57,336 nucleotides of DNA from Anthoceros angustus (Eukaryota; Plantae; Anthocerotophyta), in the NCBI GenBank assembly GCA_010909165.1, contig VJWM01000334.1, forward strand, positions 1-57,336, given 5' to 3'. Below, one piece after another: positions 2,571 to 55,510 of this stretch (position 1 is its first letter; every line of letters starts with the position of its first letter). Under the pieces are notes generated by a model. The model saw only the letters and a program-made list of their open reading frames with translations, was not told the origin of the DNA and searched no databases. A program made the translations under genes and the position numbers.

Positions 2571-2842
2571 TGGCGGAGCCAAGTGAGGAACTGCTGCTTC
2601 CTCCGATTGATCTGCGAGGAAGTGGTGACAACGGATTGATTCGATGATCTCGACAATGTTGAATCTTGATGCATCCGTTGATTATTTGGTGGACTTGCTT
2701 GAAGGTGTGGACTACGGTGAGAGCGGATCGCAACCCACCGAGATTCTAAATTTTGAGGTTGGCCAGGATAGAGTCATGAAGTCTCAGACAGTGACATAGC
2801 AAGGATGTAACCAAAGGTCGTTTTTTGATTTATGAGTCGTTT

Positions 2843-2950
2843 GTTGATGCTGCACCGAACGTCCGGGTTTTTGTCCAGGGTTGATGGTGCACTGGACGTG
2901 CGGGTTTTTTATCTATGGGTTGATGCTGCACCGGACGTCCGGTTGTTTGT
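2843..2950. repeat. Three imperfect tandem copies of a ~38-bp unit (GTTGATGCTGCACCGGACGTCCGGGTTTTT...)
   Basis: Units start at about 2843, 2880 and 2919. Confidence 0.85.
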
Positions 2951-3099
2951 TGGTTCTCAATTTATGGAAGGCATGATTCTTGTTCACCGAACATGATAAT
3001 ATTTGAAGGGGCTCAATATACAAAGCCGCTTCCAGAGAAAAAACCGCTTTGTTATTCTCTCTGATGGCAAAGCATGGATTATGTGTGTGGTTGGAAGGG

Positions 3100-18500: not shown

Positions 18501-21500
18501 TGAGAAGCCTATTAAGAATATAAGTGGCAGTGACAACTGCCTCTGCCCAGTAGGCTTTGCTGAGCCCGGACCACGCCAACATACTCCTTGTCATGCTGAG
18601 CAAAGTTTGATTACGGCGTTCGGCTACCCCATTTTGTTGCTGAGTATAAGGGATATCTTGGTGGCCAATTGACTGGCTGAGCTGCAAGATACTCGTCAAA
18701 AGCAGCATTCTAGGCTACATGCGTTATCGATCTTAAGCAGTGAGGTGAGTCCCATCATCTCTGTATGATTGAGCAAACTCTTTGAATAGCAAGAAAGAGT
18801 CTGATTTTCGCTTGAGGGGGTATGTCCAGGAATACCGACTAAAATCGTCGGTGAGTGTGAGGTAGTAAAGAGAACCTCCCAAGGACGGGACATGAAGCTT
18901 CCCAGAGATGTCTGCATGTACTAGGTCAAGGATGGCAGTAGACCTATGAGCCAAAGTAGCAGGAAAAGGTAACTCTTTTTGCTTGGCTATTATGCATGCA
19001 TCACAAAGAGGAAGTTCTTTGAAGCACTTGGGAAGAGGCTCGGTAACATTCGAGGTTGGACATCCTTATCAACTTATCCTTATTAGCATGACCGAGGCAG
19101 GCATGCCAAAGTTAATAACTAGAGGCAAATGAGACCTAGCAACAAGATGGACCATTAGCGAGACACTTCATGTCTAGCCTGTATAGATCCTGCACTAGTA
19201 AGCCCTGGGCAACTACATAAGAGGATCTAGACTTGCTAAGAGTGCAACCAGTAGCATGAAAGCGAAGCTCTAAATTGTTGAGCTGCATCAGCTGACTAAC
19301 AGAGAGAGGTGTTTTGCCATGTCAGGAACAAAGAGGACATTATCAATCTGAAAAATCTGGCCATTCGACTGCCTGAAAGAGCAAGAACCTCGGCCAAGAA
19401 TTTTCAGACCTGTCTTTGTGAGTTCATCTCCAAGCAGCACTTTTTCACACTGTGGAGAGAGGAGTAAAGTTACTCATCAATTTTCTGTCATGGCAGACAT
19501 GTGATGTTGCTCCTGAATCGAGATACCAGGCATCATCAAGCCTGGAAGCTGCAGACAGGCAGACAGTCAGTATCACGGCTTGCTTGCAGTGGAAAAGCCC
19601 TTCGATGGCTTGTCCTTGGAAACCACATGAGCCTCAAACGGTTTGTTAGTTTTCTCGGCCTTTTTGGGTTCTCCAGATTTCTTCTTCCACCACTCCGTTC
19701 CCAAGGACCACGAGAACCACACACGATTCTGAGAGCCTTGCCTTTTGATGCATGCGGCGAATCTTTGGAAGACCCAGCTACAAATAAGTGCTTGCCTCTG
19801 CTTTGTGGTTTAAATTTAGTTGTAGAAAGGACTTTATCAGTTTTGGTGCGACGAGTTTGAGTGTGATTGTCGAGGCCTCTTCTGGAAGAGGGCTCTGTCT
19901 GCAAAGGCGATCATGGCCAGGTTGTCCATTTGTGGCGGCTTTGCGGCCTCGAGTGTAGCACCATAGCTGGTGACAAAGGCTGTAATGCGGCGGAAGAGCT
20001 CATTAAAAAGCCCAGTTTCATAGCGGCATCAAGTTCGGGCATGGGAAAACCAAGGAGATCAAGTTGGCTCGAAGTTATCGAACTTCATCACCAAGCAACA
20101 ACTGTCTCCTTCACGCCTTGTGATGAATAGAGCTCACTCGGCGGCCAGGGAGGGTAACCGTTCGTTCTTCGCGTCCAATGCGTGCGTGCGATTGTGTCCA
20201 TATGTCTTCAGCCTTAGTGAGGAAGGCCACATCGGGCACTAACACCTCGTCCAGGCCACTTATGATGAGGGCACGAGCCACAATGTTAGCATTCTCCCAT
20301 ACATCACAATGGTGTTGTGGAAATGCTTGCAGTTGTTGAAGCGCCCGGCTCACGGCCTCCATACATGCCAAGCATCAAGGGCCCTTTGTCACAGGACGCT
20401 CGGTGCGGTATTTAGTTCCATTGAACCTGTCACGTTCCTTAAACTCTATTGTAGGTTGGTATGTATGGGGAAGGGGTGGCGAGAAGAGGCGGCCTGCATA
20501 CTGCATGTAGTGCTAAACTGGCCGAGAGGTGGCTATGGGAAGCCCTTGCCCAGTGGGAGTACATGTCCAAACCCTGTTCCTTGCCCACTCGCGGGATTTC
20601 CAGACCCGACTCCATATACGAGGCGAGATTGGCGAATCCGGCTCACAGTGCGGGCAAAGGATTCCTATCCGCTCGAGGGATGGCGGGGGTTGAAATCTTG
20701 GGACGTGGGCGGGGTGAGACGGGGGCACGGTTCCTTGGCGAATGATAGGCCGCTCAGATCCGGCGAGGTAAAGGTATAATACGATCCGATCTTTGAAAGC
20801 CATGAGCAGAGCCATTGTTGCCGTTTCAAAGCACGATATGCTCGAGATTGCCTGGATGTCCTCCAGGGTTTGCTGCAGGTGGGAAGGTGCCGGGCGCTCC
20901 GTGTGGCGGTGAGCTCGGGAGGGAAGGCATACCGCATGAGTGGGCCTTTTGCCGGTTGGAGGCGCACTGGGATCACACCTTCCTTGGACCGGGATCTCCG
21001 ACATAAAGCCCGAGATCGTCACCAGCATCAGAACCTGCGTCTCCAGAATTTTCAGCCATGTTTTCGGTGCAAAGTTGGATTCAGATTGTATCTGATGGTG
21101 TGTGGTGGCAGATCCCGGATGTGTATCTATGACTGTTCAGATTGCGAGGTCGGGCCGGACAGGGTTAGGAGGCGAGGCTGCAGGTTGGTGCGCTTGAGAA
21201 ACTGCCTCGCGGATCTTGCAGGGGTTTCACTTGCATTGCGTCCTCCGCGTAGTGATGCCCGTGTGTTAGCGAGTCCGTCCTTTCCGGTGACCCGGTGATG
21301 CATTGCACAAATCGGCGTCCTTTCACCAGATGTATGTGTGTCCCTGCTCTATCACAGATGCATGAAAAATCTGCTCACGGCGTTTCGTATCTCCCTTGCT
21401 TGTTTGCAGGATTGCTTGGCCAAGCAAAGGATCGGGCTGAGCCCGCAGCTATCACAGGATGGTGTGTCGATGGCCGTCAATCACAGGGCCATCGCTGATG

Positions 21501-27418: not shown

Positions 27419-30400
27419 TGTTGGATAATATTAATTATTAGTTAAGCTACATTGAATATACCTAGGGCACTCTTTGGTAAGCCCTAGAAGCTAGTTAGTT
27501 ATTATAACCGTTTTCACAGGACATGGATATATGTTCCTTGTACCCCTTTCTTGTTATTAAGACGATTTGCTCTCAATGCTGTGCGTGTTTTCTGATTCTG
27601 CTGTGAACCTATAAACGGAACATGGTATCAGAGCCCTGTGTCTCGATTGTTTGATCTCTGCCATGAATCGGCAGCTTGTTCTCCAGTCCATCTAGTAACT
27701 ACAATGGCATTCTGCCATAACCCTAGTGACTAGATAAAAATGCCTCATGAGCAAGTCTGCGAGCAACAGACGAGTTTGAGAAAGGAAGTCACATCAAAAC
27801 ACGAGCCGATTTTGAGAAACTTTACTATAAAGCGACATCTGCTGGCGACAGAGGAGAGCTCGGTTTCTTGGCGCGTTTCTTTATTCTCAGACATCTGCAG
27901 CAAACAACCGATCATCTAATTGGATCTGACGTGTTATTTAAATCACGGGCTAGTACTTCACGCAAAGCCCACGTCGAGCTTTCACACAACATCAGGCAAT
28001 TCTTAATTCAATTCTGAACATTAAAAGCACAGTCTTGGAATATACATCAAGAATTGATACCATCGGATCGAGCAAGGCGATTAGAAAAGCTGCGTATTTC
28101 ACGATGACTATGTGTGGCGAAGTGACATTGCGACCTCAAGGATCGGTGGCTCGATTATGACACCTAATTGATCGCTTCTTAACTCGCAGGCATCATGTCA
28201 GGCTCTACTAATCGACACGAGTTCGAGATAGGTTGCAAGAGAAGGGAATCCAAATAATTTTGATGAGGTTTGAGTGCGGTGCATCCTAGAGGAAAAGCTC
28301 TATGGAGGTGGGTTGATGGAGTGCACCAAGAGGGTGTGAGGCCTAGCCATACGGAACACATACACCAAATGGGGTGAACTATGTACCTTGGACAATGAAA
28401 GATGAGCTAGAATGGAAGTATAAGGACAGGAAGGCACGTACCATTCTCGTTGCCTCATCTCGGAGATGATACCTCATATAAGATTGGCCTTGATCCTCAA
28501 AGCGAATGCAGTGGTGCTATCGAAACCTATGATTCAAAGGATATGGTGGCGAAGCTGCAACCTGCAATATCGGACACTCATGAAGGAGTGCTCTGTTGAG
28601 AGTCATGTAGCCAAGTTTCGAGCACATGAGCCAAGCTTGCATCCTGCGAGTGATCATTTGAATCTAGGGCAGCATCAGCTGTTGCTCTCTCTTCCATCCG
28701 ACTATGAACACTTTAGCTCTAGCTTGCGGACATCAATTTGTATCCATACACCCGACCACTACTCCTGCCTCATCAAACCTAACTGTCCAGAAAGTTGTAG
28801 GAGCCCTTCTTTAGTTTGAGCCAATCGAAAACAAATGAAGGAGGTTCTACCATACATATGTTTCACAACAGTGATCTGACCCTTTACACCAATAGAGGTG
28901 GGGGTTTTGGCAGAGGTAGGAGCCGAGGTAGAGGTAGAGGAAGTTTCGGCAGAGGTAGAGGTCATACGTCCTTTAATTCTCAGCCCAACTCAAACTCTTC
29001 ATCAACCTCAAAACCAGGAAATTGTAACTACTGCGGCAAGCCAGGACATTGGATTAAAGATTGTCGTAAGAGGATTAAGGATGACAACTCTAAAGGAAAG
29101 CATATTAATGCTGAAGTCCATAATGCAAGAACGTCTACCCCAGGGCTGTTGGTTGCATGCCTAACCTCTTGAAGGGCGCAGTGGTATCCGGTGCCTCGAA
29201 TCATATGTGTTCGGAAGAAAATCTTTCATCTCTTATGTGCCATCTTCTACTTGTCATCAAACAATTAGTGTTGGGTGACAATTCAACTATACCAATTAAG
29301 GGTTGGGCACCATTGAGGTTACCTGCGGGATGGTAGTTTCCTCTTTGGAGAATGCACTTCATGTTCCGGAATTGCTAAGAACCTGGTGAGCACAATGGCG
29401 CTTGGGAAGACAAACCAATATCGGATTACCTTCGAAGGAGTTGAATGCACAATTTCGGACTCCGCACCAACTTTTCCCATAGCTCGTGGAAAACCTCAGT
29501 TTGATCTCTATCTTGGAAGGATCGCCTCGGCTCAATCGGCGGCACAAAGATGTTACTCGCAATCTTCCAATGCCTTCAAATGGCATTGTAGACTTATCCT
29601 AATATTAAGGCCATGAGGAGATTCGAAAAGAAAATGGTAAGCTGGTTTTCGAAAGTGATTACGACCTTGACTTATGCGTGGCATGTGTGCATGGAAAGCA
29701 GTTCAAGTCCCACTTTGGGAGTGGAAATCCACAAGGCGGCAGCTCTCCACGGACCTCGTCCATCTGAGACATCTGTGGGCCTATATGCAGTGAGCTCATG
29801 GGGAGGTGCGATACTTTGTTGTATTTGAAGATGATAAGTCCCACTTCAACATCAGGCTGCTGCGTCGGAAAAGTCAAGTGTTTGTGATTTCAAGCGCTAT
29901 TTAGCCTATCTTTGAGAGGCAAAGGGACATAAGCTTAAATGCATCGGATCGGATAATGGAAGAGTACCATCTAATGCATTCGGGAATATTGTCGAGAGGG
30001 GATAACGGACAACTCACAATCCCATACCATTCGAGGTTACTTTGCGGGATGGTAGTTTCTACTGCTTTGGAGAATGCACTTCATGTGCAATCGCTAAGAA
30101 CTTGATCACAATGGCGCTTGGGAAGACAAATGTCGGATTACCTTGAAGGGTGGAATGCACGATCTCGGACTCGCACTGCAATTTTCCCATAGCTCGTGGA
30201 AAACCTCGGTTTGATCTCTATCTTATGGAACCGCCTCGCTCCAATCGGCCGGCACAAAGATGTTACTCGACAATCAATGCCTTCAAATGGCATTGTAGAC
30301 TTGGCCACCCTAATATTAAGGCCATGAGGAGATTGCTGAAAGAGAAAATGGTAACTGGTTTTTCAGAAAGTGACTTACCTGACCTTGAATTGTGCGTGGC

Positions 30401-33400
30401 ATGTGTGCATGGGAAACAGTTTAAGTCCCACTTTGGGAGTGGACATCCACGCAAGGCGACAGCTCTCCTGGACCTCGTCCATACAGACATCTGTGGGCCT
30501 ATGTCTGTGAGCTCCTGGGGAGGTGCACGATACTTTGTCGTATTTGAAGATGATAAGTCACACTTCACTGTCACAGAGCTGCTGCGTCAGAAAAGCCAAG
30601 TCTTTGACAGTTTCAAGCGCTATTTAGCCTATGCTGAGAGGCAAACTGGACACAAGCTTAAATGCATCAGATCAGATAATGGAAAAGAGTACCTGTCTAA
30701 TGCATTCCAGGAATACTGTCAGGAGAGGGGGATAACCAGACAACTCACAATTCCATATCATTCTGATATGAATGGTCGTGCCGAAAGGAGACATAGAACC
30801 ATACAGGATGCTGCAAGATCTCTGCTCTACCAGGGGAGGCTATCTATACGCTTCTGGGCAGAAGCTGTACAAGTTGCTACATACCTCCAGAATAGGTCAG
30901 TAGTTTCCTCACTGCAAGGCAGTACACCCTTTGAGTCATGGACAGGTAGTAAACCAGACCTGTCTCATCTTAGAGTCTTTGGTAGCCAGTGCTCATATCC
31001 ACGATCGATTGCGTAAGTTTTCATTCAAGTCAAGAGACACATTTTCATTGGGTATCTGCGGGCATTCATGGATAAATTGTTTGAACTGTTTCTAGGAGAG
31101 TCGTTCATTCTAGAACTGTAGCCTTTGATGAACGTCCTATCCTTCTTCCTCCCACTCATTCCTTTGATGATTTTCTTGACCAAGAGACAGTTGAACTTGA
31201 GCAGCTTGATTCTGCAGGGGAGGATTCCACTGACATCGTTAGTTTCCCGGACTCAGATCCTTCCGATCCAGTGGATATAGGTCCTGGTCCTGCCTTGCTG
31301 CCATTACATCCTTTGTTACCTCCTGATGATCACGGTCTCCCCCAGATGAAGGTTCGACCGTCTTCGATTTCAACATATCGATCCTCCTCCACCACCAAGT
31401 CAGGGTCACACTGATAATGAGGACGATCCACCAGCAGCTGTTCCAAGATACCCAGATCTTCACGATGGAGCTGGTTAACGATCCAGTGGAGTATGTTATA
31501 CCGATTCGACGATTACCTCGGCGTTCTACCCGGAAGACCTCGACCCGATGGCGAGAACCTCCTTATCGTAGTGAAGATTTGGAAGGTACCCGTCCATGGG
31601 TGCACTGATGAAGTTGTTGTGGACATGGTGAATATCATTATCAACCACGGACATGAGCCGTCCACATATCGAGGAAGCTATCTGGACGGATGCTAAGCAT
31701 TGGAAGCGACAATACAATCGAATATGACTCCCTCATACAGAACAAGACATGGGAGCTATGCCCACCGCCTGCGGGGAGGAAGATTGTTACCTCAAAGTGG
31801 GTCTTCAAATTGAAATACAAGGCGCGGTAGCATAGCGGTATAAGGCTAGACTTGTCGCGTGGGTTTTCTCAAGTCCCGGTTTAGATTATCATGACACTTT
31901 CTCTCATTGTCAAGTCACGGTCCTTAGAGTCTTGTTTGCCATATGGCGTTTTCTCTTCACATCCATCGGATGGACGTTAAAGCGCCTTTCTACGGCAAAC
32001 TAGAGGAGGAGATATTCATGCAACAACTTTGAGGGTTGAGCTTACGGCGGTGAGGAGTGGGTGTATGTAAAGCGAAAACCATTTCACTTAAGCGAGTCCT
32101 CGTGCTTGGTAGTGCATAGATGAGTTCGATAGGGTTAGGCTTCTTGAAAAGCTCCGATACCAATGTTTACCTCGCAGAGAAAGGTGGTTTTGTCATTTTG
32201 GCACTCTATGTAGATGATTGCATTCTACTTGGTACACACTTGGAAGGATTACCCGAGTGAAGGGTCATTGTCACGGCGAGTTCGATATGGTAGATGTGGG
32301 TGAACTTTCCTATTGTTTGGGAACCCGGCTTCAAAGAGATCACGCCGGTGGAACTTTGTCCGATTGCATCGGAAAAGTACATCTATGACATGCTTCACAA
32401 ATACAATCTAGAGGCTAAGGCGCCTTACTCCCCTTGAGGCTGCAAGTTGTCGATGCCAGTCTCCATAGGCAGTCAAGATAGGCTTGAGATGGAGGCGCCC
32501 CTATGTCATGGATTGGCTCTCTCATATTACCTTTCGAATCACTCGTCCGGATGTTTCTTTCGCGTAAGTATGGTTTCTCGATGCTCGAAAGAGCCGGAAG
32601 AGCTCCTGATCGACACAGCGAATACTTAGGTACCTCAAGGGGACTAGCGGACCACGGCATCCACTATACAGAGAGCACATAATGGAGAAGAACTTACCTT
32701 GGTAGGCTCTTGTGGCGGTTGGGCGGCGATCAAGATACCGGAAGGTCGATGTCGCCTTGCTTTCTGTTAGCGATAGTGCGGTGGCGTGTGGTCTTCAAGA
32801 GGACAGATCTCTCTTTCCTCCACCGAAGCAGAGTACTCAGCCCTTACACAAGCAGCTAAAGAGGCCATATGGTTGCGTCGACTCCTAGCAGATATGGGCC
32901 AGGAGCAGCGTACTCCCACTGTCATTTTCTGTGATAACCAGTCTGCCTTGGCTCTAGCACAAAACCCAGTCTTCCATGCCTGAACCAAACACATAGAAGT
33001 ACATCACCACTTCGTGAGGCATGCTGTAGAGACTAAGCAGGTTAAGTTAGAGTATATTCCGACAGAGCAAAATGCGGCAGACATACTTACCAAAGCTTTA
33101 CCTCGTCTGAAACACCATCAGTTTAAGAGGCTTTGGAGTGTTACACCACTTCACATGTCCAACAAGTCCAAAACTAGTAAGGAAGCGAGGAACATGTGAT
33201 GAAACCAAGTTCGAGGGTAACCACCTTCTAAGTCCTACCTATGGTAACCAGCCTATGATGATCCTTCGTCTTGAGGTAGAAGGAGGCAGACTTAGACGTT
33301 TTGTCCAATTTCAGCAGTTCTACAAAATTAGGATCAAAGTCCGCCGTCCTTGGTCTCGTGTCGGTCCCTTCCATCCGATCGGCCTTGACCTCTTGACCAT

Positions 33401-34441
33401 TCTTGCTCTGGACCTTTGTCGGTACTTGAAGTCGATGCGTGCGAGCGAGACCACATCACACCAAGAGTGGGAAAAACAAGTAAGGCAGACTGCTCACCAT
33501 AGTAAGAAATAAAATTTCCGTCATGTCCTCCCCATCTCCACCAGTTCTGTCTGAACATCATAATCTTAGTGGCAGGGCATATGTAGACCTCAGGAGTGCC
33601 AGGATCATCAACACCGTCACCATTTGTGACCACCCTCCTTCTTTGATAAAGGTGGCCTGTGGGCAGTTTGTACTCTCTCGCTTTGAAGTCCTCGGGCAGC
33701 ACAACCTTGTCAAGTCCTTCAGTTGGTGTCTCCGTCCTTGTTTTCCCGTAGTTGAAGGACCGAGTGCTGAACGGGATGTAGATGCGGACTTCCTTAGGTC
33801 AGCCAGGTCCTTGGTCAGCTTCTCTTCCCTTGCCTTAGCTTTAGCTAGCAACCCTTGCCGATATCTGGCGCCACCTCTGTCGGCACTCTCCAAAGTTTGC
33901 CTTGAGTGTCTCAGGACATGGCGGCGGATCACTCCCAGTGCAAAGCCTCATCTCTCCTTTGCACTCGGGTGATTCTATAGCTGGAGGCGTCCCGAGGGGC
34001 AAGTGCAGGTGGCGGCGGGCATTTGCGGCAACATCAGTCAGCGCATGGCTCTCGATTACATCAGAAGTCTATGGGTCTTACGAGCCAAGCCATTTAAAAT
34101 TTGAGAGCCTGGCGGGCGTGTGTGGAGTGGGTGTTGAGGCGAGGCATCACGAGCAGTACATCTTACAAGTTTCGGAACTTGTTTGGCTTATACCTTTGGG
34201 GACCTCGTGGTTATGGTCGTATATCCAATGAGAGGGTGTTGGATAATGTGTAATTATTAGTTAAGCTACATTGAATATACCTAGGGCACTCTTTGGTAAA
34301 CCCTAGAAGCTAGTTAGTTATTATAACCGTTTTCACGGGACATGGATATATGTTCCTTGTACCCCTTTCTTGTTATTAGGACGATTTGCTCTCAATGCTG
34401 TGCGTGTTTTCTGATTCTGCTGTGAACCTATAAACGGAACA
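27419..34441 (+). mobile_element. Copia element D: full-length Ty1/copia
   Basis: LTRs at 27419-27622 and 34237-34441 (TG...CA, about 5 differences). TSD GGGAT (27414-27418, 34442-34446). PBS TGGTATCAGAGC at 27623-27634. PPT GAGAGGG just before 34237. Confidence 0.95.
28240..33170 (+). pseudogene. Element D gag-pol (frameshifted, with an internal duplication)
   Basis: Zinc knuckle CNYCGKPGHWIKDC (about 29020-29065); clean 288-aa integrase ORF 30150-31016 (WHCRLGH, CVACVHGKQ, VHTDICGP, IRSDNGKEY, NGRAER); RT at about 31700-32600; RNase H SSTEAEYSAL...HIEVHHHF...ADILTK at 32786-33170. Confidence 0.9.
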
Positions 34442-35139
34442 GGGATGTTTGGGTCACCATGCATTCGATACTTATACATCATATGAAATTAGGCAGGTTG
34501 CTTATCGAGACGGGCAGATCGTGCGTGGTGAAGGCGATTTTACAAAGTGGATAATTAAGCCTTTACGAAGGCAAGAGGAGGAGCCGTGGCGCGGACGTCC
34601 GGTGCCCGCAGCGATTCTGGAAACGGATATTACTTCCCTTGCTCTTTGCGTTTTCTATTCCATACGATTCCGAGTGTGTACATGTGGATATGTTGGTTTG
34701 AAATAACTAGGATATTTATACTCAAATCCGAGTCGGTTCCTTGGAACACGATTTTTTTTAAATAGCATTGGCAGCGTGTACAGCTTGCCTGAACCAATGT
34801 ATAAAATAGCCTTCAGTCATTATTGTTGGTCAAGGGCGGGGTTTGCAACGAGGCATATATTGAGTACTAACGCTACAAATGTGCCGATTAAAATAAATTG
34901 CCCGATGTGGCTGGATTTCGATAAAAAAAACAGCGAAATAGGCTCTTTTTTTTCAAACCAGGTTCAATCCCAAGCAACTTCGAGCAGGATCCGTTGGCAT
35001 GAGGAACCAGTAGAAGGTGCTTTTCACAAAGGTGGGCCCACTGAAGAGTGTGTTTTTGGGTCTTGTTTGGGGGCAAACCCTTAAAAGAGGGTTTCGTTTT
35101 CATTTTAGAGCTCACAGTTGGCCTAAACGACCTCGGTCT

Positions 35140-35735
35140 CTAAAAAGTGGAGCCTGTCTCTACTTCTTAGGAGACCTTGTTTTGGAATATAGCAAAAAAG
35201 TGCACTATGATGTGTTGCACAGTGACATTCCAACCAACGTATTTGTTGGAAACTGCCCGGTGGACATGTATGCAAAATGTATGCACGCCAGATTGTTGAC
35301 CGCAAAGGATGTGGTGACATGGAACGCCATGATATATGGGTATGCAAATTGCGTTGAAATGTCGTCCCAAAGCACGGTGTCTCCCTACACCAATAACGGC
35401 GCAAACACCAGCAGCTAGCGTCCTAGCTAATAAGCACAAAGGTGGGCCCAGAAGAGTGTGTTTTTGGGTCTTGTTTGAGGCAAACCCTTAAAGAGGTTTC
35501 GTTTTCATTTTAGAGCTCACAGTTGGCCTAAAAGCGACCTCGGTCTCTAAAAGTGGAGCTGTCTCTACTTCTTAGGAGACCTTGTTTTGGAATATAGCAA
35601 AAAGTGCACTATGATGTGTTGCCAGTGACATTCAACCAAGCGTTTGTTGGAAGCGCGGACATGTGCAAAATGTATGCCCAGTTGTTGACATAAAGGATGT
35701 GGTGACATGGAACGCCATGATATATGGGTATGCAA
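35140..35735 (+). pseudogene. PLS-class pentatricopeptide repeat (PPR) gene fragment, in two copies within a tandem duplication
   Basis: LGDLVLEYSKKVHYDVLHSDIPTNVFVGNCPVDMYAKC...KDVVTWNAMIYGYA matches PPR L/S/P motif consensus. Confidence 0.75.
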
Positions 35736-35964
35736 ATTGCGTTGAAATGTCGTCCCAAAGCACAGCGGTGTCTCCCTACACCAATAACAGCGCAAACACC
35801 AGCAGCTACAAGCGTCCTAGCTAATAAGCACAAAGTCCCAGTGGTCCGATACCCGAGTACTCGGGACATTGACAAAAAACTTCAGGATTAGCTCTGCAGC
35901 GCATCCTAAGGCAAGATGACAATCCACAACCACATCCAGGACACAAGGCCAGCAGATTGTTATA
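35731..35964 (-). repeat. Putative 3' LTR of gypsy element G
   Basis: Follows the polypurine tract AGGGGTGTGTGGGGG (minus strand, 35979-35965) downstream of the integrase ORF. The PPR reading frame stops exactly where TGCAAATTG begins (35731). No partner LTR was seen. Confidence 0.5.
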
Positions 35965-36002: not shown

Positions 36003-36896
36003 TCAAGAGGTGGGAGACCTGGATCTATGGGTGCAAGCTGAGCAAAACCACAGATCTTTGGGCACCTCTAGTAATTCAGGGGTCAGGCAGAAAAGATGGA
36101 AACCAGCATTGCAGCCGTCACACAACAACATTTTGTCAGCATCATCAATTCGGCTACACACCTTGCATGGCAAATCAACACGTGGGATCCAGTTGGCGGT
36201 GACAATGTTGGGGTCGAGGTTGGGTAGATGACATGGAGCACAGTTTTTGGGTTCATTGTTGTTCTCCATCTTGTCCTTCAAGACGAGAACATTGGGGTGG
36301 ATGATACGTACTCGAAGGATCGACCTTCTGCCGGTGGCTCGAGGTGTCGACTTCTGGCTGACTGAATAGACATAGTCCCCTTCCTCAAACTTGCATGCCT
36401 TGGGCTTATAGCTGCCCCCGTGCACGTATGCATATCGCAGAGAATCCCGATGCTGTGCAATTCTAAGATTTTGCATAGCCATCGGCATGATCCTTTGAAA
36501 CAAAGCTGCCCTGTCTGAAATCACCTTGGCCCACACCCCTGGATCATCAAGCTCAACTGGCTCCTTTATCGTAGCAGCGATTGCAACTGGTGGGAGTGGA
36601 TGGCGTCCGAACAACAGGAAGTATGGTGAAAAACTATCGAGACTTGCCTGGTTGGACATCCGATACCCCATAGCTAGGTAGGGGAGGAACAGATCCCAAT
36701 CTTGCTTGTGCTGGCCTGTACACACCTTTCGCAATGCTATCTTCACAGTCTGGACCATTCGTTCAGCTAGCCCATCGGCTTGAGGGTGGTCCCGAGATTT
36801 TCGTCGGCGATCAATGAGTGCGCTAACCAGCAGATCCTGAAAAGCTCCTCTGAATTCAGTGACTTGGTTTGTCAGACACTCAGCACATGCACCAAA
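36003..36896 (-). CDS. Gypsy integrase core/C-terminus fused to a PHD finger
   Basis: FGACAECLT..., HPQADGLAERMVQTVK, SPYFLLFGRHP, FEEGDYVY, then the C4HC3 motif CKVC...MLLCDGC...FHLFCL...WFCSAC (about 36170-36020). Confidence 0.9.
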   Translation of the reverse strand, partial: FGACAECLTNQVTEFRGAFQDLLVSALIDRRRKSRDHPQADGLAERMVQTVKIALRKVCTGQHKQDWDLFLPYLAMGYRMSNQASLDSFSPYFLLFGRHPLPPVAIAATIKEPVELDDPGVWAKVISDRAALFQRIMPMAMQNLRIAQHRDSLRYAYVHGGSYKPKACKFEEGDYVYSVSQKSTPRATGRRSILRVRIIHPNVLVLKDKMENNNEPKNCAPCHLPNLDPNIVTANWIPRVDLPCKVCSRIDDADKMLLCDGCNAGFHLFCLTPELLEVPKDLWFCSACTHRSRSPTS

Positions 36897-36899
36897 CAC

Positions 36900-38600
36900 T
36901 ATTAAGCGGTTTGGTGCCATGTTAAAATTTAAGGAGTTCACACTTATGCAGCTATGAAACATCTATGTGATATGTCACCAGGGAAGAAGAGGTTCCAATA
37001 TGTGGAAGCATGTATGAAGCTTCTTGTCCAATCGAGTGCTTGCCACGGATCACAATACCATGTCGGACAAAGGAAGAGATGAACTTCATTGAGGCGGTCC
37101 GGTTACTTAAGGATGGGCTCTTTGGTTGCAAAAGCGAAGGTGTCTGAGATGACCATGGCATGGAGTACAATCATGCAAAGTCTTTGGGATTGATTGAGGA
37201 TGATGAAGGGCCTTGAGGCAGATGTCTACAAGCGGAACAAAGTGAACAATCGCACACACATTTTATGCATTGCCAAGCGGGGAGGGAAAGGTTTGGGACA
37301 ATGTGGACTCGATTTTTGTGGAGGCTGGAGAACTACAGGAGCGGAAGAAGCATTTACGGCGGGATAAGCAAGAAAGGAAAGGAAGCAAAGGTGGGCGCGG
37401 CGGAAGCAAGTGGACCTTGTATCGTAAAGCCGAAGGACATGTTGGCAAAGCCATGGAAATCCTTCAAGGGATACCGGTGGAGAGTGTGGGCAAATTCAGT
37501 GACGGCTACGGAAAAGTTTTAAGCTGGGTGATTGATTTGAAGGGCATGGATGAGGAGATCACGTTGCGGAAGAAGTTCCATGTCATACAAGTTGCGATGG
37601 TCAAACATCTGGGGTGCTCTTCATTCGAGGAGGTGAGGGAAGAATATCCGTTGCATTCGACAGACGGATCTTGTCCGCTTTCAAGCGCTTTTCTTTGGAA
37701 AGGTGAGTTTCCCATGTGTGAGGTCTCGAGGCGCGGCGGCCCGCGCCCTCTCTGTTTTTTCGGTTTGGCCTAACAATCCTGTGTTTGGCAGCAACTGAAG
37801 GATATTGAGGTCCTGTCCAAACTTCCAGATGTCTTCCAACATTTCATTTTTGAAGTTAATAATTGGAAAGGAGGGAGGACGAGCGGCGTGCTTTGTGGAC
37901 AAGGACCTTGAGGAAGGATTAGAGGTCTTCAATGTTCCATCCTCGGAAAAACAAGTACAATACCAAGTGGAAGCGAGATGTGTTAGACATGCGATTTACG
38001 AGGAGAGTACACACTTCTTGTGATTGGACGTTCAAGGGGTTTCAAATCGGGCCTATGGACAAGCGAATGGACAAGCGAGATGATGGATCTTTTGCGAGCT
38101 TTGCGAGAAAACAACTCGATGAGTTGAGAATGATTGTGATGCATGGTGTGGAGGCTCACCGTGAGTCGATCGGAAGTGGAGCAAGAAAGGGGTTGGTCTC
38201 ATTTGTATGGGACAAGGCGAACATGAACAATGGCGGTGGGTTTTGGAAGTGGAATATGTCACGGTGGGTTGGGGTGAAAGATGCGTGCAGGGGATAGGGT
38301 TCCAATCTTGCCAAATGCCATGCAGTACTTTCAACAATGGGAGTCTAATCGCTCATGATACGGTTGTGAGAAAGCAGTGTACATGTCACAAGACAAGGCC
38401 TGGTATGCCCATACCGAGGCCTCACAGGGCTTATGATGAAACTTATCAAAACCTTCTCCAAAGAGGAGTTTGGGTTTTGGACGCTTGCTCAGGAGTGGGA
38501 CAACGTTATTGGCGGCCCCTATTGTGTGGGCCAATTGTATTGCTATTGAGGCGACTTGAGGTGTGCGGGATATATTCCACATCGGATCAATGGGTATGAG
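36900..38600 (+). pseudogene. ParB-like plus beta-class DNA amino-methyltransferase gene, copy 2 (5'-truncated, frameshifted)
   Basis: GVHTYAA (36933), RVLATDHNTMSDK, EYTLLVI-DV(P)RGF (about 38005-38045), FVWDK...EYVTVGW (38202-38272), and GLMMKLIKTFSKE-GVWVLDACSGVG-TTLLAA...ANCIAIE (38427-38550). Confidence 0.8.
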
Positions 38601-39410
38601 GTGCTACGAGATCTTGTGAAATTGACATTGAGGCCCACCGCAGGACTTGCGCATGCAGGCCAAGGAGGTGTGTATCGTGAGAAGGACTCTCTGGCCAGTG
38701 GTTTCTTTGAATGCTCGACGGCTAAAGACCAAAAGCGGAGCCCTTTTGGCGGAGGTTATGAAACCCTTGATAATGTTTGGCCTTCAGACTCACGGCAGCG
38801 GCGGGGCCGCGAAGACTCAAGGGCCTTGGGGAGAACGATAGCTTCGATGAGCAGGAAGTGGGCGGATGCTAGCCATCGTGATGGATTCGAGTTGGCTCTA
38901 GCACACGAGTCCCAAGTTAGCCCTATAAGTAGGTTTTTTTTAATTTGGTATTTTGAAAATAAATCAAAACAACCCGGGAGAAATCTTCACCAAGGGTTGA
39001 TTCCCTATGTTACACATCGTATCATCCCAACGGAAAAGCCTTTACTCTTCCAGGGTCATCGATGCGTGCCTAGATACCATCGCGGAGTTATGTGGGACTT
39101 GGGAAGAACTCCCTCACCCACTAAAACTCCCCACCTTTACCACTATAGAGTAGGTGAATGGTTTGGTAAGCACATAGATGTGCTTCTTCTCTTTGTTCGT
39201 AAAGACTTTTGGAACGATTGCAGTTAGCCAAGTGATGTTATCATTTTCTCTTGTTGGCGTAAGGAAAAGCGCCCGGCGGCACTGCTTTCCTAATTCTTGT
39301 TCCGTTGTTGAAGCGGGTTTTCCGTCAACCCTTCTTGGACAAGGGTCGCCCTATTTTCAAACCATGCTAAAATGCTTGTTTTGGGACTGTGTGGAGTGTG
39401 CTAAGAGGGT

Positions 39411-40990
39411 TTACATGTCAGAGAAGGGGGTTCGGATATTCACCCCCTTCGAAAGATATCGTGTTCTAAGCACTTGGTGCAAGAAGGCCTGGCTAGTGCT
39501 CCTGCTGGTTTTGTCTGGCAAGGCCACCGGTTCCAACCATTTGCTAAAGTGCTCGACCATCACCATAATGTAAACGTTGCCTCTTTGTGTACGTGGGAGC
39601 TCCCCTGCCAAGTCACACGACCATCTATAGAAAAGTCCTGGATGAGCAGCAGGTGCAAGCTGGCTTTGATGTACCATGGGCGGAGGGGTGGCCTTACTTG
39701 ATCACACCTTGCAGACTCTGAAGTCCACGACTGCAGTACATCCCCTGCCAGTGAGAATGAGGGGTTAGCAGGCTGTAGGTCCGTTTCACTCCAAAGTGCC
39801 CTAGCTCCTCATGCATCCGTCGAATCAAGGGAATTCGTTCAGCTGGTGCAGGCACAATCCTCTCCGAGTCTGCGAGTATCCGCACAAGATGATCAGTCCT
39901 CCAGGCATATCGCTTAGCCCTCTTAGCCACCCTATCCTTGGTAGCCGCAGTGGCACCAGCTATGTGGGCTCCTGTCTGCAAGAAGTGCAATGTGGGTGAA
40001 TCAAGCCAAATGTCCACTGAAGCATCCATATCCACCCGGTCAGAGCTGTGAGCAAGCAAGGAGACATAAGCAGCTGTGGTGCCCCAACTAGTGTCCTCAT
40101 CAAAGTCCTGTCTAGCTCACATCTGCATAGATTCCAGGGGTGCGGGACAAATGTCGCGATACGGTGAGGAGGGCGGTCGCAGACTCAAACTCGTACTCTG
40201 CGTAGCTGCCAGTACCATCTTGCGGTGGAGTCGATCATTTGTCATTAGCCACTTAAGTGGCTGATGGTCATTCACCAGCGTGAATTTCCTTCCATAGAGG
40301 TATGGTTGAAAATGGGCCACGGCCCAAGTTACGGCTAGGCACTCCCCATCGTAACTGGAATAGTTTGCCTCAGCCCTATTGTTACTCCGTGATGCGTATG
40401 CTACCACGTACTCTTCACCATCGTCATCATGTTGGGCCAACACTGCGCCTATCCCAAGGCAACTCCAATCTGTGTGCAGTATGAATGGCTTGGAAAAATC
40501 AGGCCTCCTCAGAATTGGCTGCTCTTGGAGCTTGCGCTTAAGGGTCTCAAAGGCCTCTTGACATGCAGCATCCCAATTCCAAGGGACTTCCTTTTTCAGC
40601 AACCTATTCAATGGATGAGCGATCCTGCTGAATTCATACACGTAAACCCGATAGTAATTGGCTAGCCCTAGGAAAAGCATGAAAGTCTTTGAGATCGATG
40701 GGTTCCTTGAGCGCGAATCGACTCCACCTTGGCTCTATGAGCCATGATACCACACAATGTCGATGCCCCAAGTACTGATCCATTCCAAACTCACATTTGC
40801 TAGGGTGACACCGAAGGTTAGTGTGGCGCGACTTTGTGAAGGCGCCGGTAGCGCGCGCGATCCGTGTCGTTGTAATGGGGATTCGTTCCACGAGGAATGG
40901 ACTCGTGCTTGTGCACTTTGAGTTCTACAACCTATCGCACTTTGAGCGGACTTCATCATGTTGGGTGCAGGCTCCACAACCCTAAGTGCG
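39411..40990 (-). pseudogene. Gypsy element G pol: RT C-terminus, RNase H and integrase N-terminus
   Basis: NLRCHPSKCEFG; FLGLANYYR; FILHTDWSCLGIGAVLAQ...AYASR...DHQPLKWL; MHEELGHFGVKRT; WSCDLAGELP...MVEHFSKW. Confidence 0.9.
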
Positions 40991-41261: not shown

Positions 41262-44200
41262 TATTGAAGATAGAGTGTTTAGTTATTACTTATAGTTATT
41301 ATATCTAGCTATCTAGTGTATGTGTGTATATAGCTTTAATTTATTTAGCTTACCCTTTCATTAGGGTTACGTCCGTAGGCCAAAGGTCATGTCTCTTGGC
41401 TACTAGAATAAGTCTAGTTGCTACAATCAATTTACTAATGCTTTCTTGTATTTCTACAATAATGTAATTGATAAATACTCAATTGGTTTGCACCATTTCC
41501 ATATTTCGTAATGGTATCGAGCAATGCTAGGTGCAGATTGCATTCACAAGAATGCACATTAAATTGTGCACATGTTGATGTGCATAAAATGTTCTTTGTG
41601 TTTGTTTCTTGATTAGAAATTAGTTTCTAATAAGAAATCAAGAAAATGTTTGAGAAACCTTTTGTAGCTATTTTTGCTTGATTTGTTAATAGAAATTTTG
41701 CATTTCTAGAGCCCGTTCTAGCGCATCTCGCCATTGTTGCAAAGCAATCGTCATCACCTTAGAACGCCAATGGCAAATATCTTTATAAAATCATATAAAA
41801 ATTACAATATGTTTCTTGGAATTTTCCAAAACACAAGAATTCGCCAAATGAATGGCCGATCCTCGGGAGCGGATGCGGCTGGATGGCGCATCGCCAAATA
41901 CAACATGGTGCGCAAGAGAACGCGTGAGAAGAACTCTGCGATCTTCACCATCGGCCTCGAGGACTCCACAATCTCCCAAATGTGCAACCCCATTGTTGGT
42001 AGCGGCAATCCTCGGGGTTTCCTAACCAGCGTAGCACCACATACACATCACACATTTAAGTTCTAGACTAGAATCACATGACATGTAGGAGACGTTTTGA
42101 AAACATAAGTCGAAAGCTTTGCTGCTTTCGAGGACTTACAATCGTTCTTTGGATCAGTTAGTCACTTGGATTTCAAATTGCTTGCTTTGTTGAGGCTGCT
42201 CTTCTTGCTAACCACAATCGGAGGGACACATGTAAGCATGCTACAAAAACTAACAAGCATCACAAATTTGAGAATCCAAACTCGTGTCCATCTGCATGAC
42301 CTATTCCTTTAATCATGGGAGATTAGGAAACACAACATAAGGGAAAAGGTAGATAGGAGTTGGTCAATTTGCACGGGTGACCAGCGTCAACCCATCTTAC
42401 CTCAGAAAAGCATTTTGCACCTGATATGCGTGTAGCATCATAACTCTTCTGAATCCTCACACTGTTAGCCGCACAGTCACATAGTGCATTAGAAATTCAT
42501 CCATAAAATCCTCACATGAGGGGACTAACAGTCCTAAACATGGGTGACTCTAATTTAGCGGGAGGATTCAAAGAGAAGGATAGATTGAGGCGATTATGAC
42601 ATCTGGGTACTTAGAATGCGTGGTGCCCTTCAAAACAAGCGATTGTGGCCTGGGTTCATGGGACGTCAAAGTCTCCTAATCGTGGCACCCCTCATGATCG
42701 AAGGCACTTGATGCTTGGACACAAGGGCCGCACAGTTCCTCCTACGGAGTGGTCATCGTGACATGTTGAGACAGACCTCAGTTGCAAAACCTCACCGATA
42801 TTTGGGCCGGCTCCAAAGTCTATTCTTTGGGCCGATGACACAAGTCAAATGGCCGCAACTATACAAAACTTGAAGATGAAAGAAGGAGAATCCATTGAAA
42901 AACACGACTACCTTCGGATCCCTAAGTCTCCAAGTTTGAAAGTCTGCCGCAGGATAGTGTGAAGGACCGAGCTCTCATTCTTCATTTCATGATGTCACTC
43001 CACGAATCTTGGGCACATTTCGTGACCTCATTCAACACCTCGCAACTACAAGGCGGAAGATTGCCCAGTGCGGTGTTGATCTCCCAAAACAACATTTGCG
43101 GAATTAGTGGGAGCTCTTCTTCGTGAAGAAGTCACAAGAGGACAATTCAAAGCGTCTGGTAAACAAGCTTTGTACACTAACAACAAAGGAAAGGGCAAGA
43201 AGCCCAACTTGGTAGACAAAATACCTCGGTGCTAGTAGCTCTGAGAGTCTCTACACCAAAGAAGCCCAAGAAGGCTGGAAAGTGCCTGCCAAATTCCGTG
43301 CCATTGGGAGTCCGAGTGTCGAAGAAGCGTCGAGTACCTGCAAGGAGGGCAACTCCACTTCTCGGACACATGTTGTGGTGACTAAACAAGGCTCGTGCGG
43401 CCCTCACGTAGGGACCAGGAGTTTTCCTACCCTCTTGCTAACCCACATGCTTGTCAAATACTCAAGGCAAACCCATACAGAGTGGTTCCTTGATACAGTG
43501 CAACAAGCACATCTGCTTTTGAAGTTCATTAAATCTCTGGTTAGTTCACAAGCATTTGTTTACCTAGGTGACGATAGTAGGCTTGCGTGCCACAGTGTTG
43601 GCACCGTCAAGCTACATCCTTCGAGCATCACACTCTTGCTAACCCCATGCTTGTGCAAATACTCAAGGCAAACCCATACGAGTGGTTCCTTGATACAGTG
43701 CAAGCTTTGTCTGTGACAGTTCATTAAATCACATCTGAGTTAGTTCACATTTGTTTACCTAGGTCGATAGTAGGCTTGCGTGCCACGGTGTTGGCACCGT
43801 CAAGCTACATCCCTTCGTGCATCACACTCTTGCTTACAGATGTGTATCATGTGCACGAAATGACAAGAAACTTGATTTATTAGAAGGTTGAACATGGATA
43901 ATCAAAGTCACATCCTCTTCACTCGGCGAATGTAGGATTATAGATGCTTTTGATCATCGCAAAATCCTAGCCTATGGATCATCGACCATGATCTCTTTAG
44001 GCGCACACTCACACCGGTCATGCCAAGGCTAGCCTAGCTTCAAAAGGTCGAGGCAGGCAAAGCAAGAAGAACAAGCTAGGTTATGGCATGCACGCTTAGG
44101 TCACCCTCACGGCGCAAAGTTGCAAAAACTAGTACTAGTGACACATGATGGTAAAATTGGCGGTTGCCATCCTTACCTCTCTGTGAAGCCTGCTGTCCAA

Positions 44201-53200: not shown

Positions 53201-54820
53201 AGTGGAATACCACTTCATTAGGGATCTTATCAAATCGGGTCGATTACAGAGTATATACCAGCAGAGACAATCAGATTTGTTCACAAAAGCCACGAGTAGG
53301 GGCCTTTACTTGAGCACATGAAAAGTTTGGGCATGGCGCCGAGGCTACCAGGAGGCCAAGCAAAACCAATCCTAACCTAGCCTATGAGCTAAAGCCGCAA
53401 TTTAATCATTCTTGGCCATCATCATATCATCATAGCTTGGGGAGGCGTAAAGGGACCTCCTACTCACGTTAGTAGAGTCTTAAGTCTTCTCCCAAGATGC
53501 ATGTCCGATGAAGTAGAGAGAATGTCTCACCACTGAGCGAGGGGTTTCTTTTCTTTCTCCTCGTAGGAGATCCTCTCCTTGGTGCCTGGCTCTCCTCCTC
53601 GTCTAGCGTTCCTCGGATCACAGTGAGGGGCGAGTGGGGCTGATTAGGAAAAGGTGGTGAATTCATGGCAGCGGACTGCGGGGTTTAGGAAAAATTGGCA
53701 AACTAAATGTGGCGAGAAGGATTACGCCCAAGCAGGAAGAGTAATACTTACTATAGAAGCTTATGATGTGGTCATCTAAAGCACAGGCCGATTCTGGACA
53801 CGGACTCTCACCATCTTGAGCTGTGACCAGCACACCAAATAAAGCACTGAGGCAGCACAACCCCGAGGTAACAATTTTCGTCTCCGACGACTCGTTCTTA
53901 AAGGCTCGGGAACTTGGGTCTGCGAGGAGGATGTGGCTCGCCGGATGAATACTTGAACTCACCCTTCTACTTTTGCACTGCGTCAAGCAAGCTCGAAAAT
54001 AATTGGCTTCTGGCTGGCGGGGTGCGAGGCGGCGGTGGGCTCCATCTCGCGGTCTTCTGCGGGGCTCTTGCTCCACTTGCTGCGGCTACTGCCCGCGCCG
54101 CTCCTCAAGCACCGGCGTTGTTGTTCCTTCCTTTCGGCACCCTAAGGCGGCAGTTCGCAGAAGACCCATTTGTGGGCTGCCGCTGAGTGGTTACTCCCTT
54201 TGCCTCGGCTCGGGAGATGGGCGGTCATTCTAACTTCTGACGCCAAACCTACCTAGAGCATCCCTCACAGTGAACCACGGCGCTTGGCGGTGAGGACAAG
54301 TCACGGACTCGGAAGATGAGACATCTTGCCTAGGAGCTTGGGATCTCGCTCTAGAAGGCATGAAAGAATGAACCCAGGAGCATTAAAGGCAAGCTAATAT
54401 GCTTATGGCACACATGTAAGGCCGCCTTCACCTGGTTTGTTCCATTCATTTCGGTTGAAATTTGCTGAGGTACATCAAATCTTGTACACACACACGCCTC
54501 AGCTCACACTTCTGATCACACGGTGCTTTCGCGGAGAAAAGGCTGTACACTATGCAATAATCAACAAGTGGGAGTATTGAAGATAGAGTGTTGAGTTGTA
54601 CTTATAGTTATTATATCTAGCTATCTAGTGTATGTGTGTATATAGCTTTAATTTGTTAGCTTACCCTTTCATTAGGGTTACGTCCTAGGCCAAGGTCATG
54701 TCTCTTGGCTACTAGAATAAGTCTAGTTGCTACAATCAATTTACTAATGCTTTCTTGTATTTCTACAATAATGTAATTGATAAATACTCAATTGGTTTGC
54801 ACCATTTCCATATTTCGTAA
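41262..54820 (+). mobile_element. Copia element E (host of nested F), with non-canonical TA...AA LTR termini
   Basis: LTRs at 41262-41511 and 54575-54820. TSD TTCAC (41257-41261, 54821-54825). PBS TGGTATCGAGC at 41512. PPT AAGTGGGAG at 54566-54574. gag about 42560-43400, INT about 44080-44900, RT about 45250-46250; RNase H is split at 46385/52992. Confidence 0.9.
46386..52986 (+). mobile_element. Copia element F nested in the RNase H of element E
   Basis: LTRs at 46386-46582 and 52791-52986. TSD (C)ATATG on both sides. PBS TGGTATCGAGCC at 46583. PPT GAGAGGGAG. Removing F restores GPICWSSR in the RNase H of E. INT VHVDLCGP/FWAEAVSTAAY (49729-50760), RT TTVKCKWV/YKARLVAKGYSQ (from 51118), RNase H HARTKHIDIQHH (from 52335). 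Confidence 0.9.
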
Positions 54821-55510
54821 TTCACGTTACTGCGGAAGGTTACGACTGCCTTCTGACCTCGTTCCAGCAGCCTCCGAGGATGGCTTCCGCCCGGTAGTCA
54901 CCCCAAGCGCCTCCTAATCTCCTTGGTGCACACGTTACTGCGAGAGTAAACCCGTGACTGCAACCTGACCTCGTTCCAGTGACCTCGAGGATGGCTTCCT
55001 TGACGTCACCCCAGCGCCTCCCTAATCCCCTCGGGCGCTTCACGTTACTGAGTGGCCGCCTGCAACCCCCGGCCTCGTTCAATGACCTCGGGGATGGCTT
55101 CCGTGGAGTCACCCCAAGCGCCTCCTAATCCCCTCAGCTGCTTCACGTTACTGCGAATGGCTTTCGGCACTGCAACCCCGACCTCCGTTCCGGCCTCAGG
55201 GGATGGCTTCCGCCCCAAGCGCCTCCCTAATCTCCCGGTGCACTTCCGTTAGCGGAGAAGTGGCTTGACAACCTGACCTCCGTTCCAGTGACCTCGGGGA
55301 TGGCTTCCGCCCAGTCACCCCAAGCGCCTCCCTAATCCCCTCGGGCGCTTCACGTTACTGAGTGGCCACCGCACTGCAACCCCGGCCTCGTTCAATGACC
55401 TCGGGGATGGCTTCCGCCAGGTCACCCCAAGCGCCTCCTAATCCCCTCCAGGGCTTCACGTTACTGGAGAAGCTTGGCCCAGCACCGCAACCCCTGACCT
55501 CCGTTCGGTA
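54821..55510. repeat. Tandem array of about 6.5 copies of a ~106-bp unit
   Basis: The CACGTTACT anchor recurs at 54823, 54931, 55041, 55144, about 55241 (variant), 55351 and 55457. Confidence 0.9.

Follow-up and report, generated by a model that had tools for sequence, protein, structure and literature searches.

A decayed accessory-gene fragment with amino-methyltransferase-like motifs, probably derived from a Sola1-like DNA transposon family, within a gypsy integrase

In the 57,336-nucleotide (nt) stretch of contig VJWM01000334.1 analyzed here (the window), two copies of one gene family were recognized, and both are dead pseudogenes. The copy under study (copy 2) interrupts the integrase of a gypsy retrotransposon, and the other (copy 1) lies near a decayed Sola1-like transposase. 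The features of the two copies and of that transposase are the following.

2460-4365, minus strand: copy 1 of the gene family, also a pseudogene, with a literal DVPRGF inside (tblastx).
36905-38559, plus strand: copy 2 of this accessory gene (three-frame translations; collinear with copy 1 in tblastx).
36933-36965, plus strand: GVHTYAAMKHL, a putative ParB box resembling GxxRxxA, at the extreme left edge of the fragment.
37058-37317, plus strand: conserved helical block (KEEMNFIEAVRLL...NKVNNRTHILCIAK...EGKVWDNVDSIF), 44-83% amino acid (aa) identity to copy 1 in tblastx.
37339-37410, plus strand: Lys/Arg-rich linker (ERKKHLRRDKQERKGSKGGRGGSK), with KKSKGKRK as the copy 1 equivalent.
37513-37702, plus strand: conserved block of exon sequence (KVLSWVIDLKGMDEEITLRKKFHVIQVAMVKHLG...RFQALFFGK), matching copy 1 at 69% aa identity across 51 residues.
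37703-37791, plus strand: phase-0 GT-AG intron of copy 2, 89 nt (DNA alignment of both copies).
3570-3450, minus strand: homologous intron of copy 1 (same alignment).
37789-37901, plus strand: conserved block QQLKDIEVLSKLPDVFQHFIFEVNNWKG / EDERRALWT, 57-78% aa identity to copy 1.
38014-38043, plus strand: putative motif IV site of copy 2, LLVIGRSRGF in frame (alignment with copy 1).
~3224-3195, minus strand: putative motif IV site of copy 1, LMIMDVPRGF (alignment with copy 2).
38055-38078, plus strand: exact 12-nt tandem duplication (ATGGACAAGCGA twice; repeat search), yielding WTSEWTSE after the putative motif IV.
38202-38222, plus strand: FVWDKAN, resembling by eye the 'W.K' block of PF01555.
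38430-38556, plus strand: motifs X-I-II, LMMKLIKTFSKE / GVWVLDACSG(V)G / TTLLAAPIVWANCIAIE, with slashes at the changes of frame (profile scan, Pfam, hhalign).
38560-39445, plus strand: sequence flanking the fragment on its 3′ side as far as the gypsy integrase junction, holding a high-copy insert (38923-39142).
430-1880, plus strand: decayed Sola1-like transposase (...IDGMDQKKSELPHL..., ...VGHTHDQIDQMFS...), Pfam DUF7869, in three frames.

The two copies lie on opposite strands, share 66% nt identity over 669 nt, and were found by tblastx to be collinear from the GVHTYA/GNHTYA box past the putative motif I. The aa identity was 59% across 187 aligned codons, and the proportions of nonsynonymous (pN) and synonymous (pS) differences were 0.26 and 0.82, respectively, the latter being saturated; the codon blocks were picked by tblastx, which biases pN downward, although the pN/pS contrast is still large. 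This low pN against a saturated pS indicates that the family would have been under long purifying selection before it decayed. The conserved coding sequence represented here amounts to at least 550 codons. Further, many related short contigs were present in an independent DNA run (X1), confirming the multi-copy nature that had been proposed by a first-pass annotation, in which 36900-38600 was read from the sequence alone as a multi-copy plant gene with a phage-like ParB plus beta-class DNA methyltransferase architecture.

The intron is found at the same phase-0 position in both copies, in the context …FFGK / GTGAGT…CTAAC…CAG / QQLKD…, and the CTAAC branch site of copy 2 falls within 37767-37779. 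The shared intron, the 59% identity and the saturated pS together argue for an old, long-constrained eukaryotic coding family and not for contamination or a recent prokaryotic insert; and because the spliceosomal intron is conserved and the synonymous sites are saturated between the two subfamilies, a transfer from phage or bacteria, if real, must have been ancient. Of the bacterially derived mobile module suggested earlier, the mobile and multi-copy character stands. A GC-rich palindrome also occupies a matching position in both introns: that of copy 1 (3507-3532, minus strand) is perfect, GAGGGCGCCGGCATGCCGGCGCCCTC with an 11-bp stem, and the intron fold has a z of -5.4; that of copy 2 (37730-37747, plus strand) is GGCGCGGCGGCCCGCGCC with a 7-bp stem. 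The palindrome was kept despite the saturated synonymous sites, and it could, speculatively, be a parS-like protein-binding site or a splicing element.

Upstream of the intron, the helical block may be a candidate helix-turn-helix (HTH) or other DNA-binding region. Its nearest named clusters in the ESM Atlas were Myb/SANT HTH (score 0.83, weak and a lead only), and its AF2 model was all-helical at low confidence (pLDDT 54.6, too low for fold searches). The Lys/Arg-rich linker resembles a nuclear localization signal and is a putative one. Copy 1 additionally carries ~160 nt that copy 2 lacks, at 2740-3050 (minus strand) between the ALRENN/AIRENN and SRWV blocks; these consist of short repeats (…DVRCSINP…QCTINP…VQHQ…), an internal expansion in the pseudogene.

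The methyltransferase signal lies at the 3′ end of copy 2, where the putative S-adenosylmethionine (SAM)-binding motifs X-I-II are spread over three pieces in three frames, LMMKLIKTFSKE (38430-38465), GVWVLDACSGVG (38465-38500) and TTLLAAPIVWANCIAIEAT (38500-38556), 1-nt deletions at ~38465 and ~38500 breaking the motif block. Since the pieces are in three frames, the string METHYLTRANSFERASE (LIKTFSKEG.WVLDACSGVGTTLLAA…NCIAIE) quoted in the first-pass annotation exists, but it is not continuous and requires two 1-nt corrections. A hidden Markov model (HMM) was built from 120 relatives of a Vibrio phage enzyme and aligned to both strands of the window as a frameshift-aware local profile. The best match in the window was 38430-38550, comprising 41 ungapped columns at 48% identity with two -1 frameshifts; its score was 32.0, compared with shuffled maxima of 22.7 ± 2.1, and none of 120 block-shuffled windows reached 32.0 (Gumbel significance ~0.002 per strand; window-wide p ~0.004). 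Consistently, hhalign gave a P of 1.5e-5 and 48% identity over 42 columns. The previously noticed likeness of this region to PF01555 was thus upheld.

Other searches bore on the same motifs. When Pfam was queried with a 53-residue reconstruction carrying X at the frame breaks, PF01555 was the sole match (HMM 170-210 of 221, E 0.069, 13.5 bits vs. the 26.7-bit cut-off). The HMMER check proposed along with the ParB-methyltransferase idea yielded PF01555 below threshold, and ParB was matched by none of the in-frame pieces. A tblastn search of 2.3 Gb of phage DNA returned twelve records in three groups, all at E 3-8 and individually non-significant; two of the three groups (Vibrio phages and a Nodularia phage) were annotated N4/N6 methylases matched at exactly X-I-II, and the third was antisense to a hypothetical gene. 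A 98%-identical contig from the independent run has an extra G behind 38464 that repairs the first frameshift (KEGVWVLD), and a more diverged copy from that run reads EIGLDACSGA. No match was obtained for the 53-aa motif in plasmids by tblastn, nor by hmmsearch of the phage-methylase HMM against six-frame segments, the latter because no in-frame piece is long enough. On these comparisons, SAM-binding motifs of PF01555 type were accepted as real, and their position, closing a long stretch of conserved coding sequence at its extreme C-terminus, fits the beta permutation.

The half that should hold the catalytic motif gave a different picture. The literal DVPRG reported earlier for 36900-38600 is absent from that interval in every frame and was found only in copy 1, at 3212-3198 on the minus strand (DVPRGF to 3195). 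Copy 2 reads GRSRGF or LDVQGV at this position; in the DNA alignment it has lost 2 nt and, separately, 1 nt of the copy 1 sequence ATG GAT GTG CCC CGA GGA TTC. At the putative catalytic position the family has a non-canonical DVPRGF, which is ruined in copy 2 and lacks statistical support. Of the 'W.K' segment pointed out before, VWDK is present at 38205-38216, but its resemblance is by eye and not significant alone; in the Vibrio phage methylase, DLVWDKP is equally far from motif IV. Judged by eye and post hoc, the spacings along DVPRGF, VWDK, H.T…L..LIKTF and LD..sG.GTT match those of the Vibrio enzyme (~58 and ~150 residues along DVPRGF, VWDK and motif X-I). The fixed-anchor upstream test gave p values of 0.02-0.23 depending on the gap model, and extending the match in the upstream direction by capped-gap, window-wide chaining gave nothing significant; the profile comes from one narrow phage family and has low power. 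Of the beta-class order claimed at first, the C-terminal SAM motif holds, while a catalytic motif preceding it is unsupported.

At the other end of the gene, the ParB-like box reads GVHTYA in copy 2 (36933-36950, plus strand) and GNHTYA in copy 1 (4326-4309, minus strand), ~370 aa before the putative motif IV. The reading as ParB rests on ~12 residues, in which the hallmark Arg of GxxRxxA is replaced by Thr, and in copy 2 the ParB-like domain is cut by the fragment edge. The ParB motif proposed earlier is present as a short box, but a ParB domain was matched neither in Pfam nor in the PDB.

The kind of element that carried this gene is suggested by copy 1. The transposase on the plus strand is arranged tail-to-tail with copy 1 (minus strand, 4365-2460), that is, on opposite strands. 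Its piece at 1539-1877 matched PF25273 (DUF7869) with an E of 1.7e-9 and 38 bits, above the cut-off; it also carries the motif IDGMDQKKSELP, and its VGHTHxQIDQxFS hallmark (VGHTHDQIDQMFS) is common to the Ectocarpus Sola1-1 transposase (MVGHTHIQIDQIFS). We consider that the stretch is probably, though not certainly, a dead, 5′-truncated accessory-gene fragment of a Sola1-like (DUF7869-transposase) DNA transposon family. With respect to the plant gene of the first-pass annotation, the locus represents a mobile-element-borne eukaryotic family but not a host gene, being a truncated pseudogene in a gypsy integrase.

Several results weigh against this assignment. The significant methyltransferase signal is limited to ~41 residues, the PF01555 score is under the gathering threshold, and the in-frame pieces alone give no match. 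Neither copy has a canonical (D/N/S)PP(Y/F/W) tetrapeptide, and the 440 nt upstream of motif X were not significant against methylase profile columns 1-180 or the Vibrio enzyme. ParB received no support from Pfam (E up to 10), the PDB or structure. An exhaustive phmmer search with the 116-aa DVPRGF piece turned up no true relative among 1.84 billion proteins, and in the ESM Atlas this piece led to DDE_Tnp_1 (0.94) with only 142-150 shared features. No terminal inverted repeat (TIR) or target-site duplication (TSD) was seen at the segment ends (~36905 and ~39445), and the likeness to the Ectocarpus accessory protein is by description, not by protein alignment. The single phmmer match was rejected as a translation artefact of a satellite or tandem repeat and not a relative. 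Similarly, a word-indexed homologue search with the 183-aa open reading frame (ORF) of copy 1 returned nothing, PDB sequence searches with five queries returned nothing relevant, and no ParB, methyltransferase or DDE domain was recognized by Pfam in any in-frame piece of either copy. AF2 on the one long in-frame piece modelled for the methyltransferase fold reached a pLDDT of 38.7, too low for fold searches.

Among the alternatives, the least improbable is that the region upstream of motif X belongs to another module (DDE/RNase-H-like or Myb/HTH), with only a remnant of SAM binding, so that intact proteins would be inactive as DNA methyltransferases. DVPRGF in place of DPPY, the failure of the upstream half to match the methyltransferase profile, and the Atlas leads to DDE_Tnp_1 for the 116-aa piece and to Myb/SANT for the N-terminal piece all agree with this. 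However, shared-feature counts of 101-150 are rated by the Atlas itself as chance or distant, so both are leads only; Pfam contains no DDE match for these pieces; the DVPRGF-VWDK-X-I spacings are those of the Vibrio phage enzyme; and the narrow profile had little power to detect an upstream match. We regard this alternative as unlikely.

Less likely still is that the resemblance arose by chance, the X-I-II string having been stitched by eye from three frames of a family unrelated to methyltransferases. The sub-threshold PF01555 E-value, the phage tblastn E-values, the empty plasmid and PDB searches and the non-significant upstream half would agree with it. Against it, no shuffled window reached the observed score in a window-wide, frameshift-aware scan, the alignment runs over 41 columns without a gap and with 48% identity, the matches in two independent phage methylase families fall exactly at X-I-II, a diverged paralogue retains LDACSG, and exactly such cargo is reported in the literature for Sola1 elements.

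The state of copy 2 bears on whether it could instead be a functional or domesticated host gene whose frameshifts are long-read assembly errors. It ends with a TGA after ...NCIAIEAT, is 5′-truncated, and has ~14 frame changes (36933-38556) and several in-frame stops. Deletions of 1 nt account for many of these frame changes, and the 98%-identical short-read contig differs by 4 indels in 125 nt, some in short homopolymers. However, the motif I frameshift persists after these four indels are applied, and the assembly is not generally indel-ridden, as the adjacent gypsy ORFs (319 and 187 aa) are intact; furthermore, the 5′ part is missing where the gene abuts integrase codons, and copy 1 is independently broken. 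A host gene is therefore very improbable here. With its 5′ part and promoter missing, ~14 frame changes, stops, and an antisense position in the integrase, copy 2 cannot encode the family's protein; it is sequence debris documenting the family, and not the source of N4-methylcytosine (4mC) or N6-methyladenine (6mA) marks, or the domesticated enzyme, that had been envisaged. Contaminating bacterial or phage DNA, or a giant-virus insertion relic in place of transposon cargo, is scarcely credible, since, even though the best motif matches are phage methylases, the spliceosomal intron is conserved, the fragment is nested in a eukaryotic gypsy pol, the paralogue accompanies a Sola1-like transposase, and the GC content of copy 2 equals that of its surroundings in this window, which is rich in transposable elements with a GC of ~45-60%.

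The gypsy element that received the Sola1-like fragment is represented by two parts, as follows.

39411-40680, minus strand: upstream gypsy pol part with RNase H, integrase H2C2 and rve columns 6-66 (PF17919 3e-38, PF17921 5e-7, PF00665 6e-7).
36003-36915, minus strand: C-terminal gypsy integrase part (…FGACAECLTNQVTEF…HPQADGLAERM…) plus a PHD finger (PHD PF00628 E 8e-12; integrase continuation by eye).

The segment from ~36905 to ~39445 (~2.5 kb) cleanly splits the gypsy integrase between two neighboring rve-domain parts, and copy 2 is antisense to the integrase it interrupts. Its left edge is mid-gene, abutting the gypsy integrase codons, and no transposase is present in the segment, unlike the surroundings of copy 1. 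A processed-pseudogene origin was ruled out because the intron is retained and poly(A) is absent. The fragment might have entered the integrase within a larger element that was later deleted down, or might have been captured during repair or reverse transcription. Precisely on the right-hand junction of the fragment with the gypsy integrase codons lies a hairpin with a 9-bp stem, GAAGGGGGT-TCGGATATT-CACCCCCTTC (39423-39450). In this gypsy element (36006-36962, minus strand), the PHD finger is C-terminal to the integrase, at the place of a chromodomain; in chromoviruses, a chromodomain is found C-terminal to the integrase.

The insert in the 3′ flank is ~220 bp long (38923-39142) and is bordered by the near-identical direct repeats CTATAAGTAGG (38923-38933) and CTATAGAGTAGG (39143-39154). 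Its depth in the independent run was 700-3100 vs. 10-150 around it, and it is missing from one contig; it has the appearance of a very high-copy insertion akin to a short interspersed nuclear element or a miniature inverted-repeat transposable element. Among the plain tblastn matches of the Vibrio methylase, the best one (38952-39059, 'PTEKPLLF') was dismissed as spurious because it is inside this insert and without PDB or Pfam support. Elsewhere in the window, two pairs of direct repeats, each 97% identical, measure 208 bp (27419-27625 and 34237-34444) and 251 bp (41262-41512 and 54575-54821), and are probably long terminal repeat pairs of nested retrotransposons. A tandem duplication of ~410 bp (91%) occupies 35025-35835. 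Copia gag, integrase and reverse transcriptase pieces are found at 10694-11623, 30150-31013 and 16255-18708; the copia elements have the plant-type gag domains Retrotran_gag_2, DUF4219 and gag_pre-integrs, and the best database matches of the copia integrase are at most 49% identical, the few of them with an organism name including no land plant.

For the Sola1-like family itself, an ancestral protein can be proposed. Its N-terminus would have been a putative DNA-binding part, ParB-like or HTH-like, followed by a basic linker and conserved middle blocks encoded with at least one spliceosomal intron, and its C-terminus would have been a domain resembling amino-methyltransferases of the N6_N4 (PF01555) type. 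The analogy with the Ectocarpus gene of Sola1-1_Ec32 suggests that an intact member would attach to the transposon encoding it and add methyl groups at N6 of adenine or N4 of cytosine. With the non-canonical DVPRGF at the expected catalytic position, intact members may be active or inactive. It is doubtful, in our estimate, that intact members elsewhere are active enzymes with a DVPRGF loop, guided by the N-terminal part, that write 6mA or 4mC on their own Sola1-like transposon, perhaps with the intron palindrome as the guide site; were this true, and the host a streptophyte or land plant, it would be that lineage's first amino-DNA-methylation system encoded by a transposon. The DVPRGF position is where retention of methyl transfer can be probed. 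The saturated synonymous sites, the conserved intron and the strong aa constraint between two anciently diverged subfamilies suggest that the cargo gene was long under selection, which argues for some benefit to the transposon. As a dead fragment the locus itself matters little; the family adds another, apparently plant-lineage, host to the brown, red and green algae for which giant DNA transposons with a DNA-binding plus amino-methyltransferase accessory gene were recently described.

The closest known system is Sola1-1_Ec32 of Ectocarpus, a 21.5 kb element carrying a 1104-aa ParB plus N4/N6 methyltransferase gene on the strand opposite the transposase (Dinatale et al. 2025, Genome Biol 26:320, PMC12477816), and related transposon genes are known from red and green algae (PMC12477816; bioRxiv 10.1101/2025.02.11.637652). 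The family described here resembles it in the long protein gene opposite a Sola1-type transposase (copy 1) and in the shared VGHTHxQIDQxFS, but differs in the host lineage, and copy 2 is a truncated pseudogene without transposase, TIRs or TSD. In the Plavaka element of Bostrychia moritziana, PAG2 combines PF01555 with SET and PAG3 a ParB-like domain with a 2OG oxygenase, and binding and modification of their own element were proposed by the authors for these accessory proteins (bioRxiv 10.1101/2025.02.11.637652); unlike here, the two domains are divided between two proteins, where each has another partner domain, and the transposon superfamily is a different one. Phage and prophage N4/N6 methylases (PF01555; Vibrio phage 66E30.1, QZI92023.1) share X-I-II at 48% identity over 41 columns, and, as in phage ParB-methyltransferase fusions and stand-alone methylases, the SAM motif here is C-terminal in the manner of the beta permutation. 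In contrast to the DVPRGF and the intron here, the phage enzymes, of ~240-450 aa, show the canonical D(M/P)PYG as motif IV and lack introns. Similar to Marchantia MpDN4MT1a/b and bdelloid N4CMT, the family represents a bacterial-type amino-methyltransferase family in a eukaryote; whereas the Marchantia and bdelloid host genes contain TSPPY and are intact, expressed and present in few copies, the genes here are transposon-borne, multi-copy and decayed, with no (S/D/N)PP(Y/F/W). Since a Sola1 element with a ParB-methyltransferase gene has already been published for Ectocarpus (PMC12477816), the module is not the novelty that it first appeared to be: the gene architecture is an already published kind of transposon accessory gene, and the locus is a decayed new member of it.

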